In this document: one piece after another, positions 1,080 through 61,002 of the stretch
How positions within the stretch are numbered: the stretch's first letter is position 1
How the letters are laid out: each line of letters opens with the position of its first letter
Virus record (IMG/VR): IMGVR_UViG_3300032242_003291
Coordinates: 186,001 to 250,000 of that record
DNA length: 64,000 nucleotides
Direction: 5' to 3' (one strand)
Made by a program: the position numbers and the translations under genes
The notes under the pieces: generated by a model
What the model saw: the letters and a program-made list of their open reading frames with translations, nothing else
What the model was told of the DNA's origin: nothing
The model's database searches: none

Positions 1080-1556
1080 ATGAAAAGAATATTATACATT
1101 TTAATACCGTTACTATTTTTATCTTTTACAAAACCATTTTATATCCGTTATAAAGTTTTGTTCACATTAGAAAATTTCACAATATCGGGTAAAAAAGTGG
1201 AAAATATTAAACCAATTTTATATGAAGTTTTAGATAACACTACAGATGATTTATCGTTTAGTTTACATAGTAAAATTTCAGACATCAAAAGTAGTAAGAA
1301 AGCAAATTGTATTGGTTATACCAAATATTATAATTCTAAATTAATCGAGAAGTTGAAAGAAAAAGGGATTGGAAATATCACAATTTCACATGCTAGAGTT
1401 AAAATATTATTGTTTGGTGTTAATATTCACGTATTTAATTCAAACTCTTGGAAAGACCACGACGTATCTGTTGTAAAAAATAACACGACAGGAGATGTCT
1501 ATTATGTAGACCCAAGTCTGTCTGAGGTATTTGGAGATATAATTGTTAAACAGTGA
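1080..1556 (+). CDS. exported protein, transglutaminase-like/cysteine-protease fold candidate
   Basis: N-terminal signal peptide; ANCIGY...HA...HD...YYVDPS resembles a Cys-His-Asp triad layout. Confidence 0.5.
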   Translation: MKRILYILIPLLFLSFTKPFYIRYKVLFTLENFTISGKKVENIKPILYEVLDNTTDDLSFSLHSKISDIKSSKKANCIGYTKYYNSKLIEKLKEKGIGNITISHARVKILLFGVNIHVFNSNSWKDHDVSVVKNNTTGDVYYVDPSLSEVFGDIIVKQ

Positions 1557-2589
1557 TATTGACAGGATAACCAGGGTATCCATCTCCTTCTTTGAAGGCA
1601 ACTGCATTTCTCACAACACTATATAAAGTTCCTTTACCAGTAAAATAACCCGATAATGCATCTGTGAAATTTTGCATAATTTTTTCTTTTGGTAATCCAA
1701 CACTGTTAAAATCATAGTTGTCTCTTACAGTTACAGATGTTTTGTCTGGGGACACTTTGATTGCTGGTGGGTCAACTTCCCCTAACGTATACATAAACTC
1801 ACCCGCTAAACCAGGGTCGAATAGACTTCCTTGACCCGATGATTTCAAATTTTGGCTTTCTTTTTCAGAACCAGTGGCTGTCATTGCTGTTGGTAAATTT
1901 CCAGCACCTATTGACTTCCAAAGAGGATAAGTTAATCCTTTTTTAGCATTTGCTATTGCAACGCTTTTAAGAAATTCTTGTTCTTTTCTTGTTAAATCGG
2001 CAGCTGTAAATGGCTCAGTTCTACCACCCAAATAATCCATTAAAGCTCTAATGTGTAATGGTAAACTAGATTTTTTTGCTGGCGGAACTTTTTTAAGTTG
2101 TTTCATAAATCCCAAATATTGTTCTTGAGTCATTCCACCATGTGTTTCTCTTTCAAATCTTCCACCTTTACCCAAATAATCACTGTGTAAATTAGCATCA
2201 TCTTTTGGAAATAACGATTTGTTTAGTCCTGCGAACTTTGGATTGAGAGAAACGTCTGTCTTTCCAATCGATTGTTTTTTTTGTGTTTTACCTGTTGTTG
2301 GTTTTGGTGTAAATGGTAAATTGTTCAATGGTGGTAGTCCACCTATGAATCTTTTTAGTGCGGCATCGGTAAGGTTACCAAAATATCCTGTTGGCACCAT
2401 AGAATCGGTTTTAAGGTATCCTGAATCTATTAATTTTTGTTGTAACGCTTTAACATCATCTCCTCTATCACCAAATTTCAAGTTTTTCGGGTTGAGGTTA
2501 ACATAGGGACTTTGGATATATTTTTGTTCCCTCAAAACCTTTTTAACTATTTTAGTTAAGTCCGATTCTTTTAATTTTATTATTTTCAC
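1546..2589 (-). CDS. leader-bearing protein with peptidoglycan-binding (PG_binding_1-like) domain
   Basis: MKIIKLKESDLTKIVKKVLREQ leader; LKFGDRGDDVKALQQKL...TGYFGNLTDAALKRF. Confidence 0.75.
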   Translation of the reverse strand: MKIIKLKESDLTKIVKKVLREQKYIQSPYVNLNPKNLKFGDRGDDVKALQQKLIDSGYLKTDSMVPTGYFGNLTDAALKRFIGGLPPLNNLPFTPKPTTGKTQKKQSIGKTDVSLNPKFAGLNKSLFPKDDANLHSDYLGKGGRFERETHGGMTQEQYLGFMKQLKKVPPAKKSSLPLHIRALMDYLGGRTEPFTAADLTRKEQEFLKSVAIANAKKGLTYPLWKSIGAGNLPTAMTATGSEKESQNLKSSGQGSLFDPGLAGEFMYTLGEVDPPAIKVSPDKTSVTVRDNYDFNSVGLPKEKIMQNFTDALSGYFTGKGTLYSVVRNAVAFKEGDGYPGYPVNITV

Positions 2590-2897
2590 TATAACGAAGA
2601 TTTATTAAGTGATTTATATAGGTCAGAATTTTCTTTTTGTAGATATTCAACTTTGACTGCTAATGCAGCAACTTGTTCAGTCAATTTCAATATAGTCTGT
2701 CTCATTTCATCTTTTTCTTTTGATGAATTTTCTAATAGTGCCTCCAACTTCGATATTCTGTCTTTACAATCGTGACGAATGAATTCTTCATCTCTTTCTT
2801 TTCTTAATGATTTTTTCTCATAAAATCTCCAAGCACTCGCAGAACCTAAAACTCCAACTATAGTAATTAAAACTGTCCAAACATTTTGTTGTTCCAT
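2589..2897 (-). CDS. membrane protein with coiled coil, holin-like
   Basis: One N-terminal TM helix plus charged coiled coil; TATTTAT at 2912-2918; upstream of a PG-binding gene. Confidence 0.5.
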   Translation of the reverse strand: MEQQNVWTVLITIVGVLGSASAWRFYEKKSLRKERDEEFIRHDCKDRISKLEALLENSSKEKDEMRQTILKLTEQVAALAVKVEYLQKENSDLYKSLNKSSL

Positions 2898-3047
2898 TAT
2901 TCTATTTTAGAATAAATATTACACATTCAAAGAAAAAGTGTCTTTTGGTCAGGATGGAAATAATTATTATTCTTTCAGAATAATAATAAGAATTAATAAA
3001 ATACTAAAAAAAAATTAAAAAACTAGTAATACTAGTTCTAGGGAATT

Positions 3048-3484: not shown

Positions 3485-3982
3485 TTATTTTCCTTTAATC
3501 ATTTCCATTGCATGTTTCAAAAACTCTTTTGCTCTTGGTGCAACATGTTCCATTCCATAAACCTTTTCGATGTCTTTAACTAATTCTTCACCGTGTTCGT
3601 TTTCTTTGTATAACTCGATGATTTTATCCATTGCGGTTCCACACTCTTTTTTAGTTTCGTCAAAATAGTTGTACGGTTTGAATCCTTTTAGGTGATTCAT
3701 AACGTCATACGCCAAATGTTCTCCACCATCTGAAACCTTTGGGTGTAATCTTAAAGTTTTTAACAATTCAAGTTTGTCAACTAGTCCGTGAACACCTTGT
3801 TTTCTTAATTTAACTCCATCGATATAGTCATCTGCATCACCATCACCCATAATTTCTTCTAATGTCTTAACATTTCCACCATGACAGAATTTTCTGTCAT
3901 CTTTTTGTTCTGACTGCTCAACCAAATACAGTTTTTGTATTTGTTGCTTTTCTGATTCTGTTATTTCAAATCTTTTTCCCAT
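3485..3982 (-). CDS. leader-bearing hypothetical protein
   Basis: MGKRFEITESEK...LVEQ; TATTTAT at 3987-3993; terminator at ~3428-3450. Confidence 0.8.
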   Translation of the reverse strand: MGKRFEITESEKQQIQKLYLVEQSEQKDDRKFCHGGNVKTLEEIMGDGDADDYIDGVKLRKQGVHGLVDKLELLKTLRLHPKVSDGGEHLAYDVMNHLKGFKPYNYFDETKKECGTAMDKIIELYKENEHGEELVKDIEKVYGMEHVAPRAKEFLKHAMEMIKGK

Positions 3983-6455: not shown

Positions 6456-6740
6456 TTACTCTTCGTATTTTATATTCTCAAAATTTTTGTTAATATCATC
6501 CAAATTTTTATCTAGTCTTCCTTGTAATTCTGGATGTAATTTTTTCCCTGTTTTGAACATTGCAAGAAGTTCTTGCAGTTTATCCATTATTTCTTCAACA
6601 GTTTCTTCAACATCTTCGTTACCATTGCTAGTGTCTATTTGCATTGGTTGTGAATAAATATCCAAATCCATAGCAACAGCATTTAAGCCTTGTTCTTGTA
6701 ATTTTTTTAGTTGTAATTCTGTTAAAATATATTTAGCCAT
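6456..6740 (-). CDS. leader-bearing hypothetical protein
   Basis: MAKYILTELQLKKLQEQ. Confidence 0.8.
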   Translation of the reverse strand: MAKYILTELQLKKLQEQGLNAVAMDLDIYSQPMQIDTSNGNEDVEETVEEIMDKLQELLAMFKTGKKLHPELQGRLDKNLDDINKNFENIKYEE

Positions 6741-6749
6741 TTGATATGA

Positions 6750-6761
6750 TATATTTATAAA
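6750..6761. promoter_or_regulatory. palindromic TATTTATAAATA, candidate bidirectional phage-class promoter
   Basis: Sits between divergent genes starting at 6740 and 6777 and gives TATTTAT on both strands. Confidence 0.6.
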
Positions 6762-6776
6762 TATAAAACAATACGT

Positions 6777-8593: not shown

Positions 8594-9691
8594 ATGAATT
8601 TAAGAGAAAAAATATCAAAACTTATAAAAGAAGCATTAGGTATACCTGAAAACATTTATGAAACATCTGTTGATGTATACAATGAAGTCTTGAAACAACT
8701 TGACCAACCTCCTCATATAAAACGTGATGATGACGAAGTCAAATTATATTTTATGATTGAAAAGGGTTTGAGAATTTCGGATTTCTTATTACCAAGAATT
8801 TTAATGGAATTTACAATTCATGTTGATGAAGATTACAATGAATTTGAATTAGTTAGTATGAATGTTCAAAGTGAGACGGAAAGACCAACTGAAGACAACC
8901 CATCAAAACTCAAAAAGACAGAAGTTGAAGATTTGATTATAAATTCGGTATTTGTTGGTCCTGAGACTTTTGTTCTTGAAAATTTCAAAAATTTTTTAGT
9001 TTCAATCAAAAGTGAATTTGTATCTAGTGTTTCTCACGAATTGAAACACGCATATGACCACACCAAAGGGGAGTACGAATCAGTAGAATATAGAGCGGGT
9101 TATAATGCAATAGCAGGTAAGAAATTTAACATCAATTGTGTTGACCTATTTTTTCATGACTTGTATTATGTAATGGCTAGTGAAAATTTAGTTAGACCAA
9201 CAGAAATTGCATCTGCAATCAGAGAAAATAAAATCAGTCAAAAAGACTTTTTGAAGTTTTTAACTAATAGTACAACATATCAAAATCTAAAAAGAATCTC
9301 ACAATTCACATTAGAAGGTTTCAAAGATTGTTTAAGAAAAGAAATGAAATCAGTGGATAAATTCTTTTACCACGTAGGTGGTGGTGAAGGATTGAGTGAA
9401 GAAGAAAAAGTTAGTAAGATTATAGAATTAGTTTACATCAATTTGGTCAATTGGAAAATAGATGCTTTTAGAGAAATATTAACCTCAGAATTTATCGAGG
9501 AAATTTTAGGGTTCAGAGGTCAAAAAAAGAAAACACTCGATAACTTTATCAAAAAAACTTTGAGATTTGAAAAAAACCCTGAAGACTTTTTTAGATATGA
9601 AGAAAAGAATTTTAGGGATGTGGGAAACAAAATGATTAGAAAGATATCCAAACTACACTCTATCACTCATCCAAAATCCGTCGATAGTTAA
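8594..9691 (+). CDS. HExxH zincin-like protein
   Basis: VSHELKHAYD and downstream RPTE; N-terminal LIKE; TATTTAT at 8582-8588. Confidence 0.6.
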   Translation: MNLREKISKLIKEALGIPENIYETSVDVYNEVLKQLDQPPHIKRDDDEVKLYFMIEKGLRISDFLLPRILMEFTIHVDEDYNEFELVSMNVQSETERPTEDNPSKLKKTEVEDLIINSVFVGPETFVLENFKNFLVSIKSEFVSSVSHELKHAYDHTKGEYESVEYRAGYNAIAGKKFNINCVDLFFHDLYYVMASENLVRPTEIASAIRENKISQKDFLKFLTNSTTYQNLKRISQFTLEGFKDCLRKEMKSVDKFFYHVGGGEGLSEEEKVSKIIELVYINLVNWKIDAFREILTSEFIEEILGFRGQKKKTLDNFIKKTLRFEKNPEDFFRYEEKNFRDVGNKMIRKISKLHSITHPKSVDS

Positions 9692-10467: not shown

Positions 10468-10842
10468 TTATTCTATGGTTTTCACAGGTAATTTGAAATT
10501 ATCAGTAAACCATTTCTTGAATGGTTCGTGCCATTTATCACCAAAATATCCATCTAATTTAATGTCGTATGGATGCTCAAGTTGTACTATTGGACAAAGT
10601 TCTTTAGCTTTACTTCCATCATCAAAATATTCACAACCATACCACATAAAACATCCATCTTCATCTCCATTATAATCTCCAATATAAAATAAAATTCTAC
10701 TTTCGTCATCACCTTCTTCACCTGTTTCATCATCTATTATGTCATAGGGATTGGTCCAATTAATATCATCAACATCAAATATATCATCGAGATATGTCAT
10801 GATTACACTTTCTAATTTGGACTCTGTGATTACGTATCTCAT
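10468..10842 (-). CDS. leader-bearing WF-family protein
   Basis: MRYVITESKL; LDGYFG...FKKWFTDNFKLPVK. Confidence 0.8.
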   Translation of the reverse strand: MRYVITESKLESVIMTYLDDIFDVDDINWTNPYDIIDDETGEEGDDESRILFYIGDYNGDEDGCFMWYGCEYFDDGSKAKELCPIVQLEHPYDIKLDGYFGDKWHEPFKKWFTDNFKLPVKTIE

Positions 10843-11441
10843 TATTTATTTTGACTTTTAATCTTTTCTAATGCTTTATTAACTTTCATCCACTGTTTTT
10901 CTCTTTCGGCTCTTTCAAGGTCTTTCTTTTCTTCTCTTTTTCTCCAATTGGCAAAACTATCAGGATTCATTTTTTCTCTTGCTATACGAATCAAATCATC
11001 CTTATTTTGTAATTTTGTTTCAATATCGGCAGTTCTTTTCTTAAACCCTTGTAAATCAAAATCAGGTTCTAATTTATCTTGACGTGTTGCGTGGTGGGGT
11101 TTTCTAACTTTTGCAGGTAAATCTCTTTCTTCACCATGTAATTTTTTGAATTTAATTCCGTACTTAGCAACTCCACTCTTTCCACCAAATTTATCAAAAA
11201 TCCATTTTGTAACATCTTCTCTTAAATCCTTGTCGGAACTAAAAAACAAATTGTCCTTTAATTCATTGAACGCATCCAAAGAAACAATACCACTTGTAGG
11301 TCCTAATTGAGCCATAAGTTTACCATTAACATAAATGTTTCTATGGTCTCCCTCATGTTTAATCTCATAACCATTAAACATATCTTCTAACATAGAAGAC
11401 ATCAATTCGTTGGCTTGTTGTTCTGTTATTATAATTTTCAT
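10842..11441 (-). CDS. leader-bearing WF-family protein with charged tail
   Basis: MKIIITEQQ; VTKWIFDKFG. Confidence 0.8.
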   Translation of the reverse strand: MKIIITEQQANELMSSMLEDMFNGYEIKHEGDHRNIYVNGKLMAQLGPTSGIVSLDAFNELKDNLFFSSDKDLREDVTKWIFDKFGGKSGVAKYGIKFKKLHGEERDLPAKVRKPHHATRQDKLEPDFDLQGFKKRTADIETKLQNKDDLIRIAREKMNPDSFANWRKREEKKDLERAEREKQWMKVNKALEKIKSQNK

Positions 11442-12036: not shown

Positions 12037-12054
12037 TATTATAAATACATCGTT

Positions 12055-12313: not shown

Positions 12314-13033
12314 TTATACCATATTTGAACCTTTGGATACTCCTAACGAAGCATATACAGGTTCTGCAATTGATTTTGCTTGATTAGCTATTTGTTTAAC
12401 TACATTTTCGTAACCGCTACCAGCATATCTTTGATTGTTTGAATTTGTAAAGTTATTCAATAAATCAGATGCTGTTTTACCAACCAAATAATTTTTGGCA
12501 ATTAAATCAAAATAAGTTTGAATACCGTCCTCAACTGAGGAATGATATACATTCTTTCCTGTATCCACGTTCCCAACATTAAATGGATTTTTGGTTCTAA
12601 TTGGTCTTGCATTTGGATTACTTGCAAATCCACCTTCAGTTGCAAGTTGAGCCAAAGCTAATTCAACAGGAACATATTTGTTAAATTTATTGTAAGTATT
12701 TTTTGCTGCACTTGCTAACATATCACCTGTAATCCCTAATAAGTTTGATGACCTTTTAGAAATGAAATTGTCTGCAATTGTTTTATATGCATCATATCCT
12801 TGGCTTGTATTCAAATCTAATGGTGTAAATGTCCCTGAGGTAGACAATCCAGCAGCACTTGATGTTGATGGCGTAGAGTTATCTTGTTTTTTATCAAGTC
12901 CTTTTAAGAATGATGACAAATAACTTGTAAAATCGTTAGGATTTTTATTTTGACCAAGTCCACCTAACATTTGACTGGCAAATAAGTTGGCTAATTCTTG
13001 TTCAGTTAATATTACTTTGAATTTTTTACCCAT
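12314..13033 (-). CDS. leader-bearing glucosaminidase/lysozyme-like cell-wall hydrolase
   Basis: MGKKFKVILTEQEL; ALAQLATEGGF...KNPFNVG...YFDLIAKNY...RYA; start re-assigned to 13033 (TATTTAT at 13038-13044). Confidence 0.75.
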   Translation of the reverse strand: MGKKFKVILTEQELANLFASQMLGGLGQNKNPNDFTSYLSSFLKGLDKKQDNSTPSTSSAAGLSTSGTFTPLDLNTSQGYDAYKTIADNFISKRSSNLLGITGDMLASAAKNTYNKFNKYVPVELALAQLATEGGFASNPNARPIRTKNPFNVGNVDTGKNVYHSSVEDGIQTYFDLIAKNYLVGKTASDLLNNFTNSNNQRYAGSGYENVVKQIANQAKSIAEPVYASLGVSKGSNMV

Positions 13034-13593: not shown

Positions 13594-14160
13594 CTAATAT
13601 CTACCAGTCAAATAAACCCACATAGTTTCTGGAATTCTTGTACAAGTGGTTTTGTGACCCTTATCATTTTCACAAGGGATGTTTGGTAGGGTCTTAATCA
13701 TGGCTCTCAATTCCTTAGGGGCCCCTTTTAATAATTTTAATACGTCGTTTTTGGGATAAACGTTTTCTCTATTATATTGCTCTTTGATAATATGTTCTTG
13801 TAGTTCATTATCTTCTTCATCACCATCGAAACTATATCCTGAAAAATCTAAAGAATCAATTTCCGCAATTTTCTTCAGTCCTTTAGCAACGAAGGCTTTC
13901 CTGAATGCATCTTTAGTTTGTTCATTATCAAGACCAAATAAATCTCTGATACTTCTGAATAACGAATGACCAATTAAAATATGATAACCCTCACCCTTTA
14001 CCCAATCAGCCTCAATACCATTATCGGCATCATGAGTTCCCTTTGGAAAAAAAGAAAATTCTTTATACTTCTTAAAACGAAAATCAAGATTATTCAACTT
14101 GTCTAATGCAAATTGAAAGGCTAAATTCTCTAATTGTTGTTCTTGTAATATTATTTTCAT
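13594..14160 (-). CDS. leader-bearing WF-family protein with extra C-terminal module
   Basis: MKIILQEQQL; IRDLFGLDN; internal LQE and IKE before the second module. Confidence 0.75.
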   Translation of the reverse strand: MKIILQEQQLENLAFQFALDKLNNLDFRFKKYKEFSFFPKGTHDADNGIEADWVKGEGYHILIGHSLFRSIRDLFGLDNEQTKDAFRKAFVAKGLKKIAEIDSLDFSGYSFDGDEEDNELQEHIIKEQYNRENVYPKNDVLKLLKGAPKELRAMIKTLPNIPCENDKGHKTTCTRIPETMWVYLTGRY

Positions 14161-16915: not shown

Positions 16916-17299
16916 TTACCAACTTTGACGTTCTACGTGTTTCACAGGTAATCCCGTATGTTTTGTAAACCATCTTTTGAATAATTCTTGCCATCTTGGA
17001 CCAAAGTATCCATCAAGGGCATCATATTTTTTACTATCAATTGTAATCATAGGACATTTATGTTCAGGTAGGGGGTCCTCATTTGGGTTGTCACATAATG
17101 TATAAAACATATGTGGTTCATCACCATTACCTTCAAAATCTGGGTCAAAGAAAAAAAACATCTCATAGCTTGTATCCATTTCATCATGATAACTTTTTTT
17201 ATCTTCCCATCCTCCTCCTGGTACAAGATGACCATCAAAATATTTCAAGATTGTATCTATCAATTTATTATTTTGTTGCTCTGTTATAATGTATTTCAT
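16916..17299 (-). CDS. leader-bearing WF-family protein
   Basis: MKYIITEQQ; LDGYFG...FKRWFTKHTGLPVK; close paralog of 10468..10842. Confidence 0.8.
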   Translation of the reverse strand: MKYIITEQQNNKLIDTILKYFDGHLVPGGGWEDKKSYHDEMDTSYEMFFFFDPDFEGNGDEPHMFYTLCDNPNEDPLPEHKCPMITIDSKKYDALDGYFGPRWQELFKRWFTKHTGLPVKHVERQSW

Positions 17300-21985: not shown

Positions 21986-22011
21986 AAAAAACCCACCTTA
22001 AGGGTGGGATT
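21986..22011 (-). terminator. intrinsic terminator
   Basis: aaaaacccacc-ttaag-ggtggg. Confidence 0.75.
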
Positions 22012-22285
22012 ATATTTTATCTACTGCTTTTGTAAACTTGTGACATTTTTCGGATACACCTCCTTCTTCATGGTCAGTAATGGATAATTTTACATTATCA
22101 TAATGAACGGTCATATCAGGATGGTGATTTTGTTTATCTGCAATTTTCATTACCGAATTAACAAATGGCATAACCTCTTTATAGTCTTTGAAATAGAATG
22201 TTTTAATAAGTTTATTACCACTTTCTTTCCAATCACTTTTATTCATAATTGTTCTTTTTTGTTGTTCTGTGATAATATATTTCAT
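22010..22285 (-). CDS. pterin-4-alpha-carbinolamine dehydratase (PhhB-like) with N-terminal leader
   Basis: W..SGNKLIKTFYFKDY..VMPFVN.V...ADKQNHHPD...ITDH..GGVSE; MKYIITEQQ leader. Confidence 0.85.
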   Translation of the reverse strand: MKYIITEQQKRTIMNKSDWKESGNKLIKTFYFKDYKEVMPFVNSVMKIADKQNHHPDMTVHYDNVKLSITDHEEGGVSEKCHKFTKAVDKI

Positions 22286-24286: not shown

Positions 24287-24324
24287 TAACAATAAATATA
24301 CCGACCCATTTGTTTGATATAAAT

Positions 24325-36281: not shown

Positions 36282-36383
36282 TATGGAAGATTGGATTGGA
36301 TTCTTTTATATGTTAATAATTAAAGGAATGTTATCAGCTCTAATTGTGATTGGAGTTTATGCCCTTATTAAAAGAAAAAGAAA

Positions 36384-42524: not shown

Positions 42525-42965
42525 TTACATTTGGTTCAAGACCATATGTTCAATCTCATTTTTATTAATCAAATATACAGGTAAGTGTGTCAAGTGTTTT
42601 ATATTAATTGCTTTGTATAACCTATTTAATCCATCTGAAACTGATAAATTACCATCTTTTTCTTTTACCACTAATAAGGGATAAGATAAATCTGCCTTCA
42701 AAACTCTATTCTTATCGTTAGGATTACTAATGTCATAACTTAAGTCCCACCATTCCAAATTATGTTTAATTTTACTTAATGGAAATTTTTTATGTAAATA
42801 TTTTTCGGGGTTACTTTCAACAAAATCATATATGGATTTTACACTAAAAAGATTGCCATCGTCATCGGCAAATTTACTATCCTCAAAAGGTTCATTAACA
42901 TCTCTATCTAATTTATCTTCATATAAGATACTTTTGATTCTTGATATTTCTTCGTGAAGTTTCAT
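42525..42965 (-). CDS. leader-bearing ParB/Srx-like domain protein
   Basis: MKLHEEISRIKSILYE; ADLSYPLLV...SDGLNRLYKA. Confidence 0.65.
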   Translation of the reverse strand: MKLHEEISRIKSILYEDKLDRDVNEPFEDSKFADDDGNLFSVKSIYDFVESNPEKYLHKKFPLSKIKHNLEWWDLSYDISNPNDKNRVLKADLSYPLLVVKEKDGNLSVSDGLNRLYKAINIKHLTHLPVYLINKNEIEHMVLNQM

Positions 42966-43369
42966 TATTTTTCTCCGTACATTAATTCTTCATATTTGAA
43001 AAAATCTTTTTCAAATGATTTAATAAAAATACTAGCCAATACGTTAGCCATATTTTCTTCAGGTCCACCAATATCTTTTATTGGTTGGTCGTCTCTTAAT
43101 CCCATTTTTTGATGTTGATATTCATGTACCCATTCATGTGCAATTGTTTTGAGAACATCGATTAATAGACGATGTGCAGATAAAACATATATTTCATGAT
43201 TAGGAAGTCTAACTCCTGTAGTCATTGGCTCAACTCTTTTTTCTAAAAATGTAAAAGTGACATCCTCAGTAAGTTGTAGTTTGGTTTGAATAAATTTAAT
43301 AAAATCTTTAATCACTTTTATTTCGTCAGGATTAAATAACTTTTTGGTATTTTTAAGACAGACTCTCAT
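42965..43369 (-). CDS. small HExxH metallopeptidase-like protein
   Basis: TIAHEWVHEYQH...GPEENMAN. Confidence 0.7.
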   Translation of the reverse strand: MRVCLKNTKKLFNPDEIKVIKDFIKFIQTKLQLTEDVTFTFLEKRVEPMTTGVRLPNHEIYVLSAHRLLIDVLKTIAHEWVHEYQHQKMGLRDDQPIKDIGGPEENMANVLASIFIKSFEKDFFKYEELMYGEK

Positions 43370-44474
43370 GATTATAAATATCTGTAATCATTTTTAATGC
43401 CTGAGCAATTATTTGATGCATGTCGTAATACACATATGTTGCCAATCTGCCACCAAATATAACGTTTTTAAGACCCTTAGTTAGTTCGTGATACCTATTA
43501 TAGACCTGAGTGTTTTTATCGTCTCTAATTGGGTAATATGGTTCGTTATGACCATCGTATTCTTCAGGGAACTCGTAACTTATGATTGTACCTTTTTGAC
43601 CTTGATAGTCAAACCATTTATGTTCTAATATTCTGGTAAAAAGAGTTGTGGAATCTGTATAATTAACCACAGGATTACCTTGGAAATTACCTTCATCTAT
43701 CGTAACATTGGTCCAACTCAAACTTCTGTAATCTAACTTACCAAACTGATAATCAAAATATCTGTCTATCGGTCCTGTATATATTATTTTCTCTGCAAGA
43801 TTGTCATAATATTCACGGTTATCGAAATAATCTTGACCTAAAGAAACATCAATACCTTCTAACATTTTTTCAAATATTTGAGTATATCCACCTATAGGTA
43901 TTCCAGTATATTTGTCATTAAAGTAATTACTATCCCACGTGAATCTTATAGGTAATCTTTTAATAATTGATGCTGGTAATTCACTACAGGGTCTACCCCA
44001 TTGTTTAGTGGTATAGCCATTGATAAGTTTTTCGTAAATATCATCACCAACAATTGACCTTGCTTGTTCTTCGAGATTTTTAACTTCGCCTTTATACCTT
44101 TGTTTTTTGATGATTTCTTTTGCATCTTCTTCGGTTTTAACACCCCACAGTTGGTTAAAGGTCCACATGTTGAATGGGAGTGTGAACATTTCTCCGTTGT
44201 AATTCGCAATAACATTATGACTATATTGTTTAAATTCAGCAAATTGATTTATGTAATCCCAAATATATTTTTCATTAGTGTGGAATATATGTGCCCCGTA
44301 TCTGTGAACATGAATACCATTAACATTTTCAGTGTAACAATTTCCTCCAAGAGTGTTTCTTTTATCAATGACTAAACAAGATTTACCTCTCTTAGTAAGT
44401 TCATAAGCACAAACGGAACCATAAGGTCCCGCTCCTATTATGAGGTAATCATATTTTTTATCGATTAAAATCAT
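43353..44474 (-). CDS. glf: UDP-galactopyranose mutase
   Basis: IIGAG, GGNC, HRYGAHIFH, YTGPID, TRILEHK, EPYYP, GRLATYVYYDMHQ. Confidence 0.97.
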   Translation of the reverse strand: MILIDKKYDYLIIGAGPYGSVCAYELTKRGKSCLVIDKRNTLGGNCYTENVNGIHVHRYGAHIFHTNEKYIWDYINQFAEFKQYSHNVIANYNGEMFTLPFNMWTFNQLWGVKTEEDAKEIIKKQRYKGEVKNLEEQARSIVGDDIYEKLINGYTTKQWGRPCSELPASIIKRLPIRFTWDSNYFNDKYTGIPIGGYTQIFEKMLEGIDVSLGQDYFDNREYYDNLAEKIIYTGPIDRYFDYQFGKLDYRSLSWTNVTIDEGNFQGNPVVNYTDSTTLFTRILEHKWFDYQGQKGTIISYEFPEEYDGHNEPYYPIRDDKNTQVYNRYHELTKGLKNVIFGGRLATYVYYDMHQIIAQALKMITDIYNHESLS

Positions 44475-45628
44475 TTGAAATCAAATTTAATTGAATCTAA
44501 ATTAATTGAAAATTCTCCAACCTTTTTTTCTATTTTGTTTTTCCAATCAACAAGATGGTTGCTTGAATTGTAATAAGCTCTATCTTCAATAAGGAACGCA
44601 AGTGTTGGGAATGGATTAACTCTTTCAGGTTGTAACATTTTTTTAAAATGAGGAATCATTTCTTCTAACTTTCCTTTTCTTTCTAAATGTTCACACAAAT
44701 AGAGTAAATGTTCATTTCTTTGTGGTTGGAATTGTTCAGCCAATAAATAATGTTCTTCAGCAGATTTATTGTCTCCAATAAAACTATGTGCATGTCCCAT
44801 CGTACAAAGAGCAAAATAACACATTTCATCTTCATGTTTAGCAGTCTTAGAGTTAGACCAATCATGAGTTAATTCTAAAAATCTTTCATAGTACCATATT
44901 GAACGTCTAGCATATTCATCGGAATGTTTTTTACCAAAGGGTAGTTCACTTGGATTACCATAACAATCAGCATAACTTTTGGCAATATACCATAAATGAT
45001 AATAGTCTTCCAAAACTTTATTTCCAACAACCTTATCTTTCTCTAATTCCAACGCATCATTTAGAAATTTTCTTGGTACGTGCCAAGTTTCACCATCTTG
45101 TGATACCTTGTGTCTAAACCCCCATGGCATTCCAACTCTTTGAAACCCTTCTCCGATTTCAGGTAAATGAATTGTCTCGTGTCTTTTATCATGTTGGAAA
45201 AACCAAGGTAATTTAGCATTCCAAAGCCATGTTCTAAAATATTTGGTATCACCAGCTTCAGCACCAATATTGAAACTTTGTATTGATGTGTTATCAAATA
45301 TAGACCAATCAAAATCTTCATCAACATGAAGTCTTTCATCAGCATCCATTCTTAAAATCCAATCACATCCATGTAAAGTTTTAAGTGCTTCTTGCAGGGT
45401 ATGGTCTCTGTTAAATCCAGGAAAGTTCCATTCAGTAAAATAAGTAAATCCTGGTATTTTTTTTTCTTCAAAGAAATTATCAATAACTTCTTTTGTGTTA
45501 TCTTCGGTTCCATTACATTGGATTACATAATAATCTATATATGGTGCAACTGACTCCAACATTCTTGTAATGGTCTTAGACTCATTGCCGACCATAGCAT
45601 TCAAACAAATTTTTGTTTTTTTATTCAT
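44471..45628 (-). CDS. glycosyltransferase family 2 with helical/TPR-like C-terminus
   Basis: CLNAMVGNE, NRDHTL, WILRMDADE, RHETIH. Confidence 0.85.
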   Translation of the reverse strand: MNKKTKICLNAMVGNESKTITRMLESVAPYIDYYVIQCNGTEDNTKEVIDNFFEEKKIPGFTYFTEWNFPGFNRDHTLQEALKTLHGCDWILRMDADERLHVDEDFDWSIFDNTSIQSFNIGAEAGDTKYFRTWLWNAKLPWFFQHDKRHETIHLPEIGEGFQRVGMPWGFRHKVSQDGETWHVPRKFLNDALELEKDKVVGNKVLEDYYHLWYIAKSYADCYGNPSELPFGKKHSDEYARRSIWYYERFLELTHDWSNSKTAKHEDEMCYFALCTMGHAHSFIGDNKSAEEHYLLAEQFQPQRNEHLLYLCEHLERKGKLEEMIPHFKKMLQPERVNPFPTLAFLIEDRAYYNSSNHLVDWKNKIEKKVGEFSINLDSIKFDFK

Positions 45629-46868
45629 AAATGTAATTCATAACTTGTTCTTCTTTGAAGAACTTTTTAACGGGTTGATGATTCTGAAATTTATGAGAAT
45701 GTTCTCTTTCTTCATCCCAACACCAATCTTCAAATCCTAATTCTTGGATTCTTTTATGTATTGCCTTGTCATAATAATCTCTTATCAATCTGGCTCTTCT
45801 GTTTATATCTTGTGCATTATTATCAACTGTACTATTTCTATTGTTATATTGTAAGTATAACATTCGTTTTACGTGAATAAACCTTGTATGTAAAAAACTC
45901 TTAACAATCATTTCAAAATCATCAGCAACGGGGGTATTTTTGTTATGTCCACCGATTTTGTGGTAAAGATTTCTTTCCCACATTCTAACGTGGTCTGGCA
46001 TTGAAATATTGAATCTTATTGTTAAAGGATTTATATCAGGGTACCAATGAGCTAAATAATCTTTACCGTCAGCGTTAACCCATGTATGACCAGCATATCC
46101 AAAATCAAAATAGTTATCATGTCTTCCGTACCAATTACCTGACCAATCGTGGTCATATGTTTTCATTTCTCCATCATCATATAATTCACAAACATCGCTA
46201 TATAAAAATCCTGCATCAGGATGTTTTAAAATTGCGTCATTACATATCTCAAGACACTTATTTACAAATTTATCATCGTGGTCTAACTCAACCAACCAAT
46301 CGCCATCACATAACATTGCCGCCCTATGTTTAGCAAGTCCGACATTACCACCTGATACTGGTAATATTTTATGTATTTTTACCCTATAATCATTTTTAGA
46401 TATATCTTGGATAATATTCCATGTCTCATCATCAGGTGAATCATCAACAATAACCCATTCCCAATTTGTCCACGTTTGATTAACCAAACCTTGATAGGTT
46501 CTTTTAATTCTTTCTCCTGTTTGATATGTTGGAGTAAAAATTGAGAATCTCGGTCTGTTGACTTTAGTATGTCTAAAAACTGTTTGACACACTATAACAT
46601 TTGCCAACACATTATCGCCCAACATCTCATCATAATGAATGTGCATTTGTCTCAATTGGTGATGAGGAATTTCGATTAGTTCATTAAAAGATATAATTAA
46701 ATCAGGTTGATAATTTGTATAATCACCGACAACATCATTGTTATAAGGTAAAGAATAGACAACAACGTCGTCAAACAAAGATTCTTCAAAATAAACATCA
46801 GAAACTAAAGTTATTTCTCCTTTGATTTCTAGTCCATAAACAATTGCGCTTGGTTTTTTTGTCTTCAT
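45621..46868 (-). CDS. glycosyltransferase family 2 (C-terminal domain)
   Basis: FSIFTPTY, WVIVDDS, ELDHDD, VADD. Confidence 0.9.
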   Translation of the reverse strand: MKTKKPSAIVYGLEIKGEITLVSDVYFEESLFDDVVVYSLPYNNDVVGDYTNYQPDLIISFNELIEIPHHQLRQMHIHYDEMLGDNVLANVIVCQTVFRHTKVNRPRFSIFTPTYQTGERIKRTYQGLVNQTWTNWEWVIVDDSPDDETWNIIQDISKNDYRVKIHKILPVSGGNVGLAKHRAAMLCDGDWLVELDHDDKFVNKCLEICNDAILKHPDAGFLYSDVCELYDDGEMKTYDHDWSGNWYGRHDNYFDFGYAGHTWVNADGKDYLAHWYPDINPLTIRFNISMPDHVRMWERNLYHKIGGHNKNTPVADDFEMIVKSFLHTRFIHVKRMLYLQYNNRNSTVDNNAQDINRRARLIRDYYDKAIHKRIQELGFEDWCWDEEREHSHKFQNHQPVKKFFKEEQVMNYIYE

Positions 46869-54604: not shown

Positions 54605-55642
54605 TTAATACCATGTTTGTCTTTTCTCATCAAACGTCCAACCATCTCTTTGTTCTCCAGGTTCTCCTGTACCTGTTGGTGGTTGTGGTGATTTTTGTGT
54701 TGTTTGCTCAGGTGCTTGTTGTGCTGATTGTTGCGCTTGTTGTGGCGCTGGTTGTGTTGTATCATTATCCCCTTCAACACCTTGTTTTGTTGTATTTCCA
54801 CTATCTTCAACAGCTGTGTAGTCACTGTATGGATTATTATTCTGAGTTTGGCCACCTTTCAAATATTCATCTTTATATGACGCCCATGCCTTTGTTGTTC
54901 TTGGACCCATTCTACCATAACCCGCACCTGTTTTGTTCAAAATATTATTAGCATACCCTGTAGCCCAACCTGCCTTGTTTTCATCTAACCAATCTTGGAA
55001 AGCCTTTACTCCTTTAATATCTTTTAATTCAGGTGGCGTCGGAGTTACACTTGAAGTAGAGCCACCCCCGCCACTTTTTTTATTAGTATCACTTTTCCAT
55101 TTTTTTGTCGCAGAAGTAAAACTATCACCATCAGCAGTGTTTATTATTAGATTAGTTCCATCTACTTTCCAAGTTCCAGTCCATGTGTCAGATACTGCTT
55201 TTCTAGCTAAAAGATTATCCCATCCATCAGAAATATAAAATTTTCCATCAGGCATAAATCCATAATAATACTTTTCATTCTCACCAGTTCTTTGTGCAGC
55301 AAGTAATCCAGTGTCTTTATTTCTCACAGTTGGATAATGAATAACCTTAAAATAAGATGTATCTTTTAGGAAAGCCATCAAAATAGGAAATTTGTCAAAC
55401 CATCCTGTAGTTGAGGCAACATTATATTTAGCGTCAAGTTCTGCTTGCTTTTTGTTAGCTGCGGCAATGTCGTCAGCAGTTCTGTGTTCAGTACCAGGGT
55501 CTATTTTGTTTAGTTCCGCTCTTTCATAACTACCAATCACATCTTCATTAAATTCTTGTTCAGAAATTACTCTACCTCTTTGATATCCAAATAAGGATTT
55601 CATTCTTGTGATATCTTCATTAATCAATTTTTTTGAATCCAT
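54605..55642 (-). CDS. leader-bearing protein with PG-binding-like segment and Gln/Pro/Thr tail
   Basis: MDSKKLINEDITRMKSL...VISEQ; VKAFQDWLD...GPRTTKAW; TATTTATAAATA at 55651-55662. Confidence 0.7.
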   Translation of the reverse strand: MDSKKLINEDITRMKSLFGYQRGRVISEQEFNEDVIGSYERAELNKIDPGTEHRTADDIAAANKKQAELDAKYNVASTTGWFDKFPILMAFLKDTSYFKVIHYPTVRNKDTGLLAAQRTGENEKYYYGFMPDGKFYISDGWDNLLARKAVSDTWTGTWKVDGTNLIINTADGDSFTSATKKWKSDTNKKSGGGGSTSSVTPTPPELKDIKGVKAFQDWLDENKAGWATGYANNILNKTGAGYGRMGPRTTKAWASYKDEYLKGGQTQNNNPYSDYTAVEDSGNTTKQGVEGDNDTTQPAPQQAQQSAQQAPEQTTQKSPQPPTGTGEPGEQRDGWTFDEKRQTWY

Positions 55643-56837: not shown

Positions 56838-56893
56838 TCTTTTTTTAAAAATAGGGAACCTCGATTTTACGACCATAGTCAACCCATTCTTAG

Positions 56894-56965
56894 TTGCGAG
56901 GGATGGATTCGAACCACCGACCTAAAGGTTATGAGCCTTCCGAGCTACCTCTGCTCTACCTCACG
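56894..56965 (-). tRNA. tRNA-Met(CAT), initiator type
   Basis: Cloverleaf with CAT anticodon, TTCGAAT T-loop, C1:A72 mismatch, A11:U24; no encoded CCA. Confidence 0.92.
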
Positions 56966-57697: not shown

Positions 57698-58045
57698 ATG
57701 AAAGTTAAAATTAACGAAAATATTATTAAAGTAAAAACATTAATTGACAAACATTCTCAAGCAATTGGTATGATGGGAAAAAAATTTGACAAATCATTTA
57801 ATGGTTTATTATTTTTAATGGGTGGAAAAAAACAATGCTTTTGGATGAAGAATTGTATCATCCCATTAGACATAATAATAATAAAAAATAATGTAATAGT
57901 TAATATACATCAAGATTGTCCTCCTTGTAATGAAGAACCTTGTCCTTCTTATTGTGGAAGAGGTAATATAGTTTTAGAACTTGCTGGTGGTAGTTGTGAG
58001 AGTCTTAACATACAACCTGGTGATTCTGTTGAATATCTATTTTAA
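57698..58045 (+). CDS. DUF192 family protein
   Basis: GMMG, GLLF, FWMKNCIIPLDII, VLELAGG...NIQPGD; TATTTAT at 57686-57692. Confidence 0.9.
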   Translation: MKVKINENIIKVKTLIDKHSQAIGMMGKKFDKSFNGLLFLMGGKKQCFWMKNCIIPLDIIIIKNNVIVNIHQDCPPCNEEPCPSYCGRGNIVLELAGGSCESLNIQPGDSVEYLF

Positions 58046-59449
58046 TTTAGATTCTTTTTCTTCTTCAATCTTTTCTTTTAGTTTTGTTTTGAATTCGTTG
58101 GCTATCATCTTTGTAAATTTAACATAAGGGTGGTCTTCGCTCTCAGGATTATAACGATAAGAACCTTGAGGTGGTCTTGTACCTCTACCCAAATAACTTA
58201 ATCCTCCAATGTTTGTGATACATTTATGCCCACCTGAATTAGATTGAATTAAATCCCATGCATTTACCAAGATACTGTCTAAAATGTTTTTTTCTCTATC
58301 AGTCAAATCTTTGAATGGTTTCTCCATCATCTCCCTAATCTTATCTAAAGCTTCCTCCCCTTTTGGAATACCTATGAATTTACCACCATATATCGCATCA
58401 AAATCTTGGAACGTATACCCAATACTTTCAGGACCAACACTAGTCTCGCTAATCCATTTAATTGTAGATAATGGTATTTTCTTGTCTTTGAGTTGACCTT
58501 CCCATTTTGATAATACTTCTTGTGCTATCTCACCTAAATTTACGCCTTTAAGTCCTCGGTCTTTTTTGAAGGGATTACAAGATGCTTGAACTAATCCCAT
58601 GGGCCAAGCCATAATCAAAAAATCGGATTCAGGATTATTTCTGAATGGTGTGTATCTATCATAAGAACCTGGTTTGAACATACTACCACCACCATATTGA
58701 TAAATTATATTATCACTAACCTGAGGAAAATCCTTCATTTGTTGTGCATAATCATCTGCATTTGATTGTAATTCTTCAGGACCTACTGAATTGGTCTTTT
58801 TCATCCACTCTTTGATGTTTCCTAATATTGAAAGTAATGATGGTTCCGAATCCATAACCAATCCTTCCAAAAAACCTGGCTTATTTTTGAATGCTAAAAT
58901 TAATTTGTTAATGACCAAACCTAACAACATTTTATTTTTTTGTAATGATTTGTCTTTATCGAATCTGTATATATAATTTACGACTTCATCAGGAGTAATA
59001 TTGTGTTTAATAAAATCCGCAGAGTCTACAGTATTAATTAACAAAACATCTGATGTTGGAAACAAATCTTTTGTTGATACTACTTGAGATATCGTTTCGA
59101 CATTTGAACGTGCACCTCTAAATTGTTTTGATGTTCCCTTTTCAACCCCTACTTGTGTGTCATGATGGTCAGTATGAATTTTGAACATTGGTTTACCGTG
59201 AGCAAAATCTACAAGGACAGGCATTGTATCACCTGTTGCATCATTTTTTTTAACTGAAAACTCCTTGTCACCATATTGAATTACATGAGCCCCAACAACA
59301 TCAATACCATTATCTTCAAGATATTTTTTCATTGCAATTGCTGTTGTAACACCATCTAAGTCCTGATGAAAATAAATTTCGGCTTTGGGATATCTTTTCC
59401 TCAAAGCCGAAATATCTCTTATACCGCTTTCGTTAATTAATTTTTTCAT
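58037..59449 (-). CDS. DHH-family phosphoesterase-like protein with short leader
   Basis: MKKLINE-SG; YFHQDLDG, VDFAH, HTDHH, INTVDSAD, SGGH. Confidence 0.75.
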   Translation of the reverse strand: MKKLINESGIRDISALRKRYPKAEIYFHQDLDGVTTAIAMKKYLEDNGIDVVGAHVIQYGDKEFSVKKNDATGDTMPVLVDFAHGKPMFKIHTDHHDTQVGVEKGTSKQFRGARSNVETISQVVSTKDLFPTSDVLLINTVDSADFIKHNITPDEVVNYIYRFDKDKSLQKNKMLLGLVINKLILAFKNKPGFLEGLVMDSEPSLLSILGNIKEWMKKTNSVGPEELQSNADDYAQQMKDFPQVSDNIIYQYGGGSMFKPGSYDRYTPFRNNPESDFLIMAWPMGLVQASCNPFKKDRGLKGVNLGEIAQEVLSKWEGQLKDKKIPLSTIKWISETSVGPESIGYTFQDFDAIYGGKFIGIPKGEEALDKIREMMEKPFKDLTDREKNILDSILVNAWDLIQSNSGGHKCITNIGGLSYLGRGTRPPQGSYRYNPESEDHPYVKFTKMIANEFKTKLKEKIEEEKESKLK

Positions 59450-59814
59450 TAAAGTCCAATCCAATTTAGGAATCTATCCATTAAACCTCCTTCATCTGCA
59501 ACAAGGTCTTGTAATTGTTTTCTGTCTTGTGGTGGCATTTTACTCCAAGTTTCTTCACCCCACACTCCATCAGGTCTTCTACAACCAATACTTGATTGAT
59601 ATCTCGATATTGCTTGTGATGTTTGTGATGTTTGATTGATGTCCGTTTTACCGTCAACAGTCAGTGGTTGTCTATTATCACCTGTAATTTTTTTATTATT
59701 CAAGAATCTTTGAATTGCTCTAATGAATTGTCTATCCATGTTTTGTTCTGAAATAACTCTTTTAACAAGATTAGTTAAATCGTTTTCTGTAAGTCTTATT
59801 ATTTTTTTTGCCAT
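59449..59814 (-). CDS. leader-bearing peptidoglycan-binding domain protein
   Basis: MAKKIIRLTENDLTNLVKRVISEQ; IRAIQRFLN...LTVDG...AISRYQ...PDGVWGEETW. Confidence 0.8.
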   Translation of the reverse strand: MAKKIIRLTENDLTNLVKRVISEQNMDRQFIRAIQRFLNNKKITGDNRQPLTVDGKTDINQTSQTSQAISRYQSSIGCRRPDGVWGEETWSKMPPQDRKQLQDLVADEGGLMDRFLNWIGL

Positions 59815-59829
59815 GTTATTGTTTTTATA

Positions 59830-61002
59830 TTAAACTGCTGCTAATGCCGATTTAGCCACTTGACTACCAAATAGTGATGAGAAAAAGTCTCCCACAGGAT
59901 TTGATGATGATGTTGATTGTGTTGTTGATTGTGAAGGTTGTGTTTGTTGTTGAGTTCCTTGAGGTGTTTCTGTACCAAAACTATCTTTAAAATATTGTTG
60001 TGCTTGTGGTGTCTGATTATATTGTGCAACTTTAGACTCAAACTTATCTTGACCCATTTTTTCAACTGCTTCCTCAGGTCCTACAAAATTTCCTATTCCC
60101 ATCCAATCTAAAAAACCCAACCACCATTTGGTTTGTCTTGCTAAAGCTCTAACTGATTTGTTTCTACCCATCAACTGTGGCATGCCACCAAATAAAGTTT
60201 TCCAAGATAAAGCACCTTTAGTTGTCCTATATGATGTAAAGAGTCCTCCCGCTTCTTTGGACATTTTAATTAAATTTTCTAAGTTTTTAACTTGGTCAGC
60301 TTTGCTCAGTCTCAATATACCAGCACCACCCGCAGGAATTCCTTTAATTTTTGCCGCTAAATCAACACCAGCAGTTCTTATAGCCGCTCCTTTAGTTGCT
60401 CCTTTTTCAAATAATTCAATCCATTGTAATATTGTGTTTTTTAACCCTTTAAATGGTCCCATCGGCATTTTTTCGATGAAACCTTTCATTTTACTTCCAA
60501 TTCTACCCATTCCCTCTGTAAATTTACCAATAATTCCACCACCTTTAGTAAGTTTTTCAAGTTCAGCTGCCGCTTCTACAGATTTACCTGCTTCAGATAA
60601 TTTTAACACTCCCTCCAAAGCTTTGGCACTCGGTGCTCCAAGTTTTAATGCCCCCATCACAGGTTTTGCAACAATATCACCAATATATGGAACCGCAGAC
60701 ACTAAAGATAAAAATCCAAATAACTTATCTCCTTGAGAGATGTAAGAAATTCCATTAACTAAATCTACAACACCAGTTGGGTCAAAAATTCCAACAATAT
60801 CACCCAATGTATTATACCAATGACTTTCATTTAATTTTTTGGCTTTTTTTGGATACAAAACTTTTAAGAATTCTACAACAAATTCTTTTTCGTTAGTTGA
60901 AAATTTTTCCCAATTTTCAGTTGCTAATTTCCTATTATTTTCTTTTGAAATGTTTTCTTGAATTACTGCAAGTTGTTTTGTGGATATAATAATTTCCGCC
61001 AT
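59830..61002 (-). CDS. pre-toxin TG (PT-TG)-like domain protein
   Basis: LGDIVGIFDPTGVVDLVNG...QGD...LSLVSAVPYIGD; variant leader; TATTTAT at 61017-61023. Confidence 0.65.
   Translation of the reverse strand: MAEIIISTKQLAVIQENISKENNRKLATENWEKFSTNEKEFVVEFLKVLYPKKAKKLNESHWYNTLGDIVGIFDPTGVVDLVNGISYISQGDKLFGFLSLVSAVPYIGDIVAKPVMGALKLGAPSAKALEGVLKLSEAGKSVEAAAELEKLTKGGGIIGKFTEGMGRIGSKMKGFIEKMPMGPFKGLKNTILQWIELFEKGATKGAAIRTAGVDLAAKIKGIPAGGAGILRLSKADQVKNLENLIKMSKEAGGLFTSYRTTKGALSWKTLFGGMPQLMGRNKSVRALARQTKWWLGFLDWMGIGNFVGPEEAVEKMGQDKFESKVAQYNQTPQAQQYFKDSFGTETPQGTQQQTQPSQSTTQSTSSSNPVGDFFSSLFGSQVAKSALAAV

Follow-up and report, generated by a model that had tools for sequence, protein, structure and literature searches.

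Why should a phage begin so many of its genes with the same few residues? The question is raised by a 64,000-nucleotide (nt) stretch of the IMG/VR virus record IMGVR_UViG_3300032242_003291 (positions 186,001 to 250,000; hereafter the window), in which 19 open reading frames (ORFs) start with one of two strict forms of a short leader peptide and five more carry weaker variants. The sharing of this leader is real and lies far beyond chance. As to its role, comparisons with related loci and with phage T4 lead us to favour, with moderate confidence, the explanation that it is a T4-style capsid-targeting sequence (CTS), greatly expanded in scale relative to T4.

A shared N-terminal leader in the window

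Fourteen ORFs of the window begin with what we call class A, M-[KR]-[YI]-[IVL]-[IL]-[TKQ]-E-x-[QKR] (typical form MK[IY]I[IL]TE[SQ]Q), and five with class B, ..K-I-[IV]-R-L-T-E-[SN]-D-L-x-x-L-V-K-R-V-[IL]-x-E. The ORFs listed in the initial annotation, named here by their left coordinates, all exist where it had placed them, and all lie on the minus strand with the sole exception of 34863–35183. The shared leader that it had described is borne out by the 19 strict cases and by profile matches above decoys: a profile built solely from leaders of other contigs placed 12 window sites above the best decoy (9.1–23.1 bits versus 8.6), 11 of them N-terminal. In six-frame translation of the window the class B core occurs five times, always at an ORF start, and the class A pattern 16 times, 14 at ORF starts and two internally (coordinates 16324 and 40994), the latter being true internal copies in 15866 and 40584. 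Chance and compositional bias are ruled out by the decoy and genome-wide controls. The leader codons vary (AGT, TCC, TCT or TCA for Ser; ATT, ATC or ATA for Ile; GAA or GAG for Glu), and the constraint therefore acts on the peptide rather than on the DNA. A Sec, Tat or lipoprotein signal peptide was also rejected, there being no hydrophobic core: three to four hydrophobic residues are followed by a charged amphipathic helix. More than 20 leader proteins had initially been counted; 19 of these are strict, but 3485, 29892, 42525 and 54605 have just an [ILV]-x-E-type variant, each weak alone, and 58037 is leaderless while keeping the junction ..LINE|SGIRD. Lengths below are in amino acids (aa).

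ORFs with a class A leader:
6456–6740, minus strand: MAKYILTELQ, 94 aa; TATTTAT upstream
10468–10842, minus strand: MRYVITESK, acidic, 124 aa, paralogue of 16916
10842–11441, minus strand: MKIIITEQQ, 199 aa
11443–12036, minus strand: MRIIITESQ, 197 aa; TATTTAT upstream
12314–13033, minus strand: class A variant after MGKKF (KVILTEQE), Ser/Thr-rich linker and weak glucosaminidase-like body, 239 aa; true start 13033, MGKKFKVILTEQE
13594–14160, minus strand: class A variant MKIILQEQQ, 188 aa
14162–14770, minus strand: MKYILTEDQ, 202 aa; TATTTAT upstream
16916–17299, minus strand: MKYIITEQQ, 127 aa
17598–17912, minus strand: MKYLITENR, 104 aa; 7.2 bits
18177–18476, minus strand: MKYIIKESK, 99 aa
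18479–18832, minus strand: MKIIITESQ, 117 aa; family members stand between portal and protease in L109-type head modules
22010–22285, minus strand: MKYIITEQQ on a pterin-4a-carbinolamine dehydratase
22847–24286, minus strand: MKIIVTESQ..VLSEQ, 479 aa, with Gly-rich hydrophobic segments and an HExxH motif
34863–35183, plus strand: MKIIITEEQ, 106 aa; TATTTAT upstream

ORFs with a class B leader:
1546–2589, minus strand: GTG start at 2589, MKIIKLKESDLTKIVKKVLREQ, with PG_binding_1, 347 aa
15866–16732, minus strand: N-terminal class B variant (MKKTLTLTESELIKVINRIVES) and, further in at about 16324, the class A sequence MKIVITEDS; resembles two fused leader genes
22298–22780, minus strand: start at 22780, MPKIVRLTESDLMKLVKRVLKES, on a DUF5872-type body
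31275–31736, minus strand: MSKIIRLTENDLVRLVNRVIKEQ, 153 aa
59449–59814, minus strand: MAKKIIRLTENDLTNLVKRVISEQ, with PG_binding_1, 121 aa

Weaker variants, leaderless family members and an internal copy:
3485–3982, minus strand: variant leader MGKRFEITESEKQQIQKLYLVEQ, 165 aa; TATTTAT upstream; 5.4 bits, under the decoy maximum
8594–9691, plus strand: leaderless member of a family whose others start MKIIITESQ; junction ..KLIKE|ALGIPEN kept
29892–30725, minus strand: weak variant MKHILNNLTEEEKNAIREQ, 277 aa; TATTTAT upstream
40584–41672, minus strand: 362 aa, class A copy inside the protein (KKYIVTESQYNLILESQ, near residue 227, coordinate 40994, 20.7 bits), not preceded by a Met
42525–42965, minus strand: weak variant MKLHEEISRIKSILYED, not supportable alone
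54605–55642, minus strand: weak variant ..KKLINED....GRVISEQE, 345 aa; TATTTAT upstream
58037–59449, minus strand: DHH-like, leaderless, junction MKKLINE|SGIRD; orthologues start MKIIITESQ....IKE|SGIRD

The description of the bodies as unrelated holds well among the relatives of the window, where 277 leader proteins fall into 125 body clusters with 91 singletons, but less well among the small class A proteins at 10–19 kb of the window: 10468 and 16916 are paralogous, as are 13594 and 17598, so that not all leader bodies are unrelated. Several small acidic leader proteins also have a C-terminal ..LFG....W motif in common, and the leader genes cluster at 10–24 kb of the window. Some of the initial domain labels could be confirmed, PG_binding_1 in 1546 and 59449 and Pterin_4a (the PhhB-type enzyme) in 22010, but the glucosaminidase (12314) and DHH (58037) matches fell under the Pfam cut-offs, and domain searches of the leader bodies found no ParB-like or toxin-like domain. 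Most bodies gave no match in Pfam and PHROGs, and a homologue search with 31275 gave only seven proteins.

Spread, candidate cleavage sites and the head module

Beyond the window, a degenerate DNA pattern encoding class A as MKIIITE[S/T/R/C/W]Q (codon WSN) occurs in at least 120 IMG/VR loci, with contigs of 4–322 kb among the matches listed. Bacterial and archaeal genomes, 596 Gb in all, contain the identical pattern four times, and three of these matches are short phage-like contigs of metagenome-assembled genomes (MAGs) that share the promoter motif and the DHH orthologue; the leader is specific to viruses. The relatives that we analysed are loci fetched from IMG/VR (given L numbers below), whose 1,412 ORFs include 229 of class A and 29 of class B. 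Core motifs are N-terminal in about 98% of cases there, and T-E, S-E or N-E mostly comes after M-[KR]-h-h-h (h, hydrophobic). Recognisable bodies comprise a phage lysozyme, an ECF-type (extracytoplasmic function) sigma factor, L5 gp82, DUF5872, DUF6576 and DHH. At E <= 0.001 a class B profile of 32 columns matches 8,997 proteins, each representing a cluster formed at 50% identity, and at E <= 1e-10 it matches 819; among the best 150 matches, 149 have an N-terminal copy and 46 a second, internal one. Such two-copy proteins are frequent (P0128–P0183; 15866–16732 and 40584–41672 in the window), with the second copy 60–290 residues in and often without Met, and they look like gene fusions or polyproteins.

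The leader is exchangeable between bodies. In the window the body of 22298 bears class B; its counterparts in L087, L044 and L110 have class A, and those in L053 and L071 a third short leader. Of 312 leader proteins, 102 have a close homologue lacking both classes, and many of these homologues start with the third type, M-K-x-L-I-[RK]-x-I-L-K-E-E or M-N-x-x-R-I-I-[RK]-K-V-L-K-E-[EQ], which we find on homologous bodies in L010, L053, L071, L098, L233 and L272, and on the window's own contig (L220:7019–8661). One and the same body may thus bear class A, class B, the third type or no leader. Class A stands on orthologues of 8594 and 58037 and is absent from the window copies, but orthologues and window copies alike keep [LI]-I-x-E directly before the conserved body; the DHH orthologues come from three lineages and differ in the residues ahead of the junction, but not in its h-I-x-E.

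Where would such a leader be cut? When each body cluster is represented once, the class A positions that carry information are those up to residue 9 and residue 13. Class B does not vary at L7, E9, L12 and E22 and is no longer conserved from residue 23 on. As read from its sequence, the leader ends at a gp21-type [Leu/Ile]-x-Glu site, the invariant I-T-E or L-T-E, and conservation stops at a second [ILV]-x-E, around residue 15 in class A and residue 22 in class B. A second [ILVM]-x-E within residues 10–24 is present in 54 of 81 class A body clusters versus 16 of 80 in a control stretch, and, also in proteins that have no strict leader, [ILV][ILV]-x-E-[QES] is enriched 5–7-fold over residues 1–20, while [IL]-x-D is not enriched there. 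In T4 (NC_000866), gp23 is cut at S-F-L-T-E|A (residue 65/66), the ipI leader ends ..S-T-I-T-E|A, ipII and ipIII begin M-K-T-Y-Q-E-F-I-A-E|A, and gp24 begins M-A-K-I-N-E-L-L-R-E|S. Since ipI and gp23 are cut at I-T-E and L-T-E, the leader ends are literal gp21 sites. T4-kind proteases remove CTS peptides of 10–20 residues (PMC5694885, PMC9958956, PMC3012670) and cleave after Glu, the gp23 propeptide being 65 residues long (PMC5694885, PMC9958956). In the capsid protein of the leader lineage itself, ..A-L-L-[NS]-E|[SA]-T is strictly conserved where the propeptide boundary is expected, some 20 residues ahead of FPIVRR..VSVQAM, a block alignable with T4.

The head genes of the leader-bearing relatives are also of T4 type. 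T4 queries (NC_000866) match TerL, portal and gp21 homologues in L079 and L109, loci fetched by the leader alone. In L140, on the same contig as L079, the gene order runs from a 474-aa protein through a 340-aa protein, a class A gene, TerL, Portal_T4 (PF07230), a 259-aa ORF, a 145-aa ORF and Peptidase_S77 (PF03420; L140:10001–10690) to a very acidic, scaffold-like protein of 421 aa (L140:10789–12054) and the Gp23 capsid protein (PF07068). The Peptidase_S77 of the leader phages keeps the gp21 motifs around His (..GEADHP..) and Ser (..VSSRGVGS..); its family is very abundant, a search at E <= 1e-10 giving 3,980 homologues on contigs as long as 297 kb, and loci picked by the protease alone contain leader genes in turn. 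Leader genes occupy variable slots in the portal–protease and protease–scaffold intervals: class A genes of the 18479 family stand between portal and protease in L109-type modules, the place of T4 gp67/gp68, and class B genes between protease and scaffold. A conserved head-module protein of 423–474 aa has the class-B-like start M-G-N-L-T-E-R-E-I-D-K-I-V-N-K-I-I-N-E|A, and the major capsid protein (MCP), scaffold, portal, TerL and protease are without leader, as in T4. A search for the prohead protease, which the initial annotation had proposed, thus succeeded in the leader-bearing relatives (L140 and L109-type, with PF03420, PF07068, PF07230 and scaffold) but not in the 135 kb examined of the window's own contig.

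That contig, Ga0335274_1365894, is 317,259 bp long, the window taking up about 185,985–249,984 of it, and the portion examined spans 156–291 kb. The window has a G+C content of 31% and no close match among 50,697 sequenced phages (megablast with 22 kb of the window). Its DHH-like protein matches only unannotated "uncultured phage" records of 634–735 kb (LR745206, LR756502, LR756501/3) at 28–44% identity by tblastn. Because 31 window proteins are held in common with the leader loci at 28–84% identity, versus only four with LR745206, the window belongs to the leader lineage. A Bacteroidetes host is indicated by Bacteroidetes-type signal peptides on several window ORFs (4768, 6777, 47473), by TAnnTTTG promoter-like sites and by one phage-like contig that has the leader too and was binned with a Flavobacterium MAG; we take the source to be an uncultured 317-kb T4-like phage of freshwater Bacteroidetes. 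Identity with the bS21 phages of PMC9723584 could not be shown, since L140 has no bS21-like ORF. The left flank of the window holds two further class B genes and fibre-like paralogues with N-termini ..PxAYNTGSPISGT..GD[IV]AV (L305:10986–17639, with a further member at 18896–20047 of the window).

Leader genes differ from the others in the frequency of two upstream motifs. Of 257 leader genes, 115 have TATTTAT in the 40 nt before the gene, versus 231 of 1152 others (odds ratio 3.2, p = 4e-15), and the motif also precedes 141 of 159 protease genes, while TAnnTTTG, of Bacteroidetes or host type, precedes 6 of 257 leader genes versus 143 of 1152 others. Within the window TATTTAT precedes 10 of 19 leader genes versus 20 of 102 others, and none of the eight ORFs with a tatctttg-type site (135, 1080, 21147, 25973, 48000, 49645, 54000, 63578) has a leader. 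The two motifs probably mark late versus early or host-dependent classes. TATTTAT lies 5–25 nt before the start codon of leader genes and, in the relatives, also of protease and TerL (e.g. 6741–6776, 12037–12050 and 24287–24305 in the window); TAnnTTTG sites ("TATCTTTG") stand before a different set of ORFs. A probable endolysin on the same contig (PG_binding_1 and Glyco_hydro_19, L307:14811–15680, about 171 kb) has TATTTAT and no leader, unlike 1546 and 59449.

A proposed head-loading tag and its alternatives

We suggest that the leader forms a short N-terminal strand followed by an amphipathic helix and that, late in infection, it would dock the new protein onto the scaffolding core of the assembling prohead. 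A gp21-family prohead protease would then remove it at one or both [I/L]-x-Glu sites, the candidates being I-T-E or L-T-E at residues 5–9 and the second [ILV]-x-E at about residue 15 (A) or 22 (B), and the matured cargo would remain in the head to exit with the DNA at the next infection. Core binding, cleavage, packaging and injection are all steps that we infer from these genomes. The putative cargo consists of peptidoglycan-binding and -degrading proteins, membrane-active proteins, small acidic proteins and some enzymes; roles in entry would suit the wall-binding and wall-cutting domains, the Gly-rich, possibly membrane-active proteins (22847, 29892) and the small acidic proteins, and a sigma factor with a late-type promoter would make most sense if carried into the next cell. 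Such a tag would be portable, which would allow cargo genes to be gained, lost, fused and swapped quickly.

The case for a T4-like head-loading tag, as the initial annotation had framed it, gains from the T4-type head module, the protease, the literal cut sites, TATTTAT and the variable slots; the following points weigh on the other side, together with the paralogy of several bodies. There is no detectable sequence homology between the leader and the T4 CTS (MKTYQEFIAE), with which classes A and B have just the M-K start and a terminal h-x-E in common. T-E-S-[QD]-[YL] also fits a helix N-cap with hydrophobic staple, and the helix extends beyond the first [IL]-T-E, so that part of the conservation could be purely structural; an AlphaFold2 (AF2) model of the 16916 family from a six-sequence alignment was uninformative, with a predicted local distance difference test score (pLDDT) of 46. 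Leader genes make up about 16–20% of the window genes, implying an unusually large cargo set. Internal leader copies exist, and the leader of 22010 overlaps the first residues of its enzyme domain. Leader proteins are on average more acidic than other proteins, in contrast to the T4 internal proteins, which touch packaged DNA via lysine residues (PMC3012670). The T4 head module and protease were not found in 156–291 kb of the 317-kb contig of the window, and that contig appeared neither among the 120 listed of the 3,980 protease homologues nor among the best 80 loci in either of two scans for related loci. A 27-residue class B query against 50,697 phage records (tblastn) gave one spurious match, the leader thus being absent from cultured phages. 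Finally, the leader also occurs on the sigma factor, the pterin dehydratase and the DHH phosphoesterase. The initial annotation had held that a leader equally common on early cytoplasmic enzymes would speak against its proposal, a point that these three proteins touch and for which the T4 Alt-like injected enzymes provide a precedent.

Several of these observations are shared with the alternative that survives best, a portable interaction helix serving some other phage-specific process (a chaperone, a replication or assembly compartment, a membrane complex), in which the [IL]-x-E pattern follows from an amphipathic helix with an optimal N-cap. Ile/Leu followed by T-E-S-[QD]-[YLF] would fit a capping box with hydrophobic staple, the low-confidence AF2 model begins its helix at residue 7, internal copies between domains are common (46 of the 150 top profile matches), the cargo includes cytoplasmic-type enzymes and a sigma factor, and a DnaJ gene is present on the same contig. 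What this leaves unexplained is an invariant Glu exactly where conservation ends, a junction Glu conserved across lineages, the identity with T4 cut sites in phages with a gp21-family protease, and the presence of leader genes inside the head module; we consider it unlikely.

Less likely still is that the common N-termini are a functionless by-product, either recombination joints for cassette shuffling or the descent of a large paralogous family. Although the paralogy and common C-terminal motifs of several small class A proteins, the clustering at 10–24 kb, the same TATTTAT directly upstream of many leader genes and the fusions of two leader genes would all be expected of shuffled cassettes or paralogues, selection acts on the peptide with free synonymous change, the leader sits on a lysozyme, a sigma factor, Pterin_4a and PG_binding proteins whose cellular homologues are without it, and it is still kept in 8,997 diverged clusters.

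We likewise regard as improbable that the leader is an expression device with no role in the mature protein, an A/U-rich, Lys-Ile/Tyr-rich start maximising initiation and early elongation in Bacteroidetes hosts without Shine–Dalgarno sequences. Codons 3–5 of A/U-rich Lys-Ile/Tyr type raise expression in E. coli reporters. The leader has AAA and then ATH or TAY codons after the start codon and a strictly N-terminal location, in hosts that usually lack Shine–Dalgarno sequences (PMC9723584). However, the MCP, scaffold and portal, presumably the most highly expressed late proteins, are without leader; the codons vary synonymously (AGT versus TCN), yet the peptide stays constant through residue 9 and further; internal copies lacking Met keep the peptide; class B conserves 22 residues; and different leaders stand on the same body. 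Least probable is that the leader serves as a timing or degradation signal, an N-degron by which a host AAA+ protease would keep late accessory proteins short-lived. Met-basic-hydrophobic-hydrophobic-hydrophobic may recall one class of ClpX N-terminal recognition motifs, but the analysis turned up nothing in favour of an N-degron, which gives no reason for the invariant terminal Glu, the virus specificity or the head-module placement, and internal copies would not function as N-degrons.

Reading the leader as a head-loading tag places it beside known systems. A CTS on hypervariable internal proteins that is removed by gp21 is known already from T4 (PMC3012670). Like the CTS of IPI, IPII, IPIII and Alt, the leader is a short N-terminal peptide on otherwise unrelated, fast-evolving proteins that ends in [I/L]-x-Glu, as does T4 ipI with I-T-E and the gp23 cut site with L-T-E; the leader lineage also has a T4-type portal, Gp23 capsid protein, acidic scaffold and Peptidase_S77, with capsid and portal proteins untagged. 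It differs in having at least 19–24 leader genes per 64 kb, against four named in all of T4, in the three leader types that replace one another, in the tandem arrangement of two candidate sites, in its internal copies and two-copy proteins, and in a mostly acidic putative cargo that includes enzymes. The propeptides of phiKZ, 201phi2-1 and SPN3US (S80 protease gp175 or gp245) provide another parallel: these large phages also package numerous proteins, which undergo processing after Glu and are ejected, and the propeptides are thought to direct proteins into the prohead (PMC5694885, PMC7411985). Those propeptides are, in contrast, mostly longer than 100 residues without a single conserved tag (9–22 conserved residues here), have a small P3 residue (A, S, G; Ile, Leu or Val here) and belong with another protease family (T4-type PF03420 in the leader lineage). 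A phiKZ-like S80-protease propeptide class was rejected on these three counts. In encapsulins, too, a short terminal peptide suffices to direct diverse cargo enzymes into an HK97-fold shell, but that peptide has no sequence relation to the leader, is usually C-terminal and uncleaved, and serves an organelle of bacteria, not a virion.

Two of the huge phages that share the DHH-like protein appear to have a tag of their own. LR745206 (634 kb, full sequence; L126–L138) lacks the class A and B leaders, but 75 of its 924 ORFs begin M-K-[YH]-[LI]-K-x-[FY]-x-E-[SN], with an own upstream motif TTAATATATA. The same type of start opens 18 of 146 ORFs in a 100-kb sample of LR756502 (L309–L310) and was not seen in a 50-kb sample of LR756501. 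LR745206 has T4-like TerL, portal, capsid, sheath and tube proteins; its capsid protein reads ..H-S-I-N-E|N at the place matching the capsid propeptide boundary, and the protease profile found no match in it. Its DHH orthologue begins MISKYNQFINEE (M-I-S-K-Y-N-Q-F-I-N-E-E), close to the T4 CTS. Given this distinct tag, lineage-specific tags may be general in these huge phages.

Taken further, the head-loading reading suggests an "injectome" of unprecedented size, an extension that we offer tentatively and rate somewhat below an even chance: dozens of proteins per virion and thousands of families worldwide would be loaded in T4-like heads and delivered with the DNA by abundant aquatic Bacteroidetes phages. 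Sigma factors, nucleotide phosphoesterases, wall hydrolases and membrane-active proteins would be among the cargo; internal tag copies would mark polyproteins cut apart inside the head; and the 634–642-kb huge phages would use their lineage-specific MK[YH]LKxF.E[SN] tag for the same purpose. The tag sequence, its three interchangeable forms, the tandem candidate sites, the internal copies, the kinds of cargo and the scale (at least 19–24 genes in 64 kb and thousands of families) appear to be new: a literature search did not meet the leader motif strings, and the CTS papers in it concern T4, P1 and SPN3US only. If the head-loading reading is true, one could list from sequence alone the proteins brought into the cell by the very abundant, uncultured phages of fresh water and the sea, with counter-defence and host-takeover factors likely among them; the T4 internal-protein principle would extend from a few proteins to much of the late gene set of a giant phage; a large group of metagenomic ORFans would find an explanation (8,997 protein clusters with a class B tag); and new short tags with a matching protease would become available for packaging proteins in phage capsids in laboratory systems. 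If it is wrong, a peptide of 9–22 residues on thousands of unrelated viral proteins still needs an explanation.

Other features of the window

The window also contains a full-length match to GOLLD RNA (RF02032; 55716–56133, minus strand; 325 bits, E = 2e-92), a large structured RNA of unknown function that stands here in a T4-like Bacteroidetes phage. A tRNA-Met (56893–56965, minus strand) lies about 760 nt from it on the same strand. Eight of the nine TTATCC[AC]CA (DnaA-box) sites of the window fall, in both orientations, within 1.7 kb (31910–33551), with 1.84 expected in the whole window. The surrounding 31.7–34.8 kb is richer in G+C and has few convincing ORFs, and no Rfam family matched in the DnaA-box region; we take 31910–33551 as a candidate replication origin or DnaA-binding region. 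A sugar-modification cluster at 43353–46868 and 35583–39499 comprises a UDP-galactopyranose mutase and several family-2 glycosyltransferases. Three paralogous ORFs (4018, 41899 and 53338) with P-loop-like "PER(C/T)G(T/S)" starts are possibly sulfotransferase-like.

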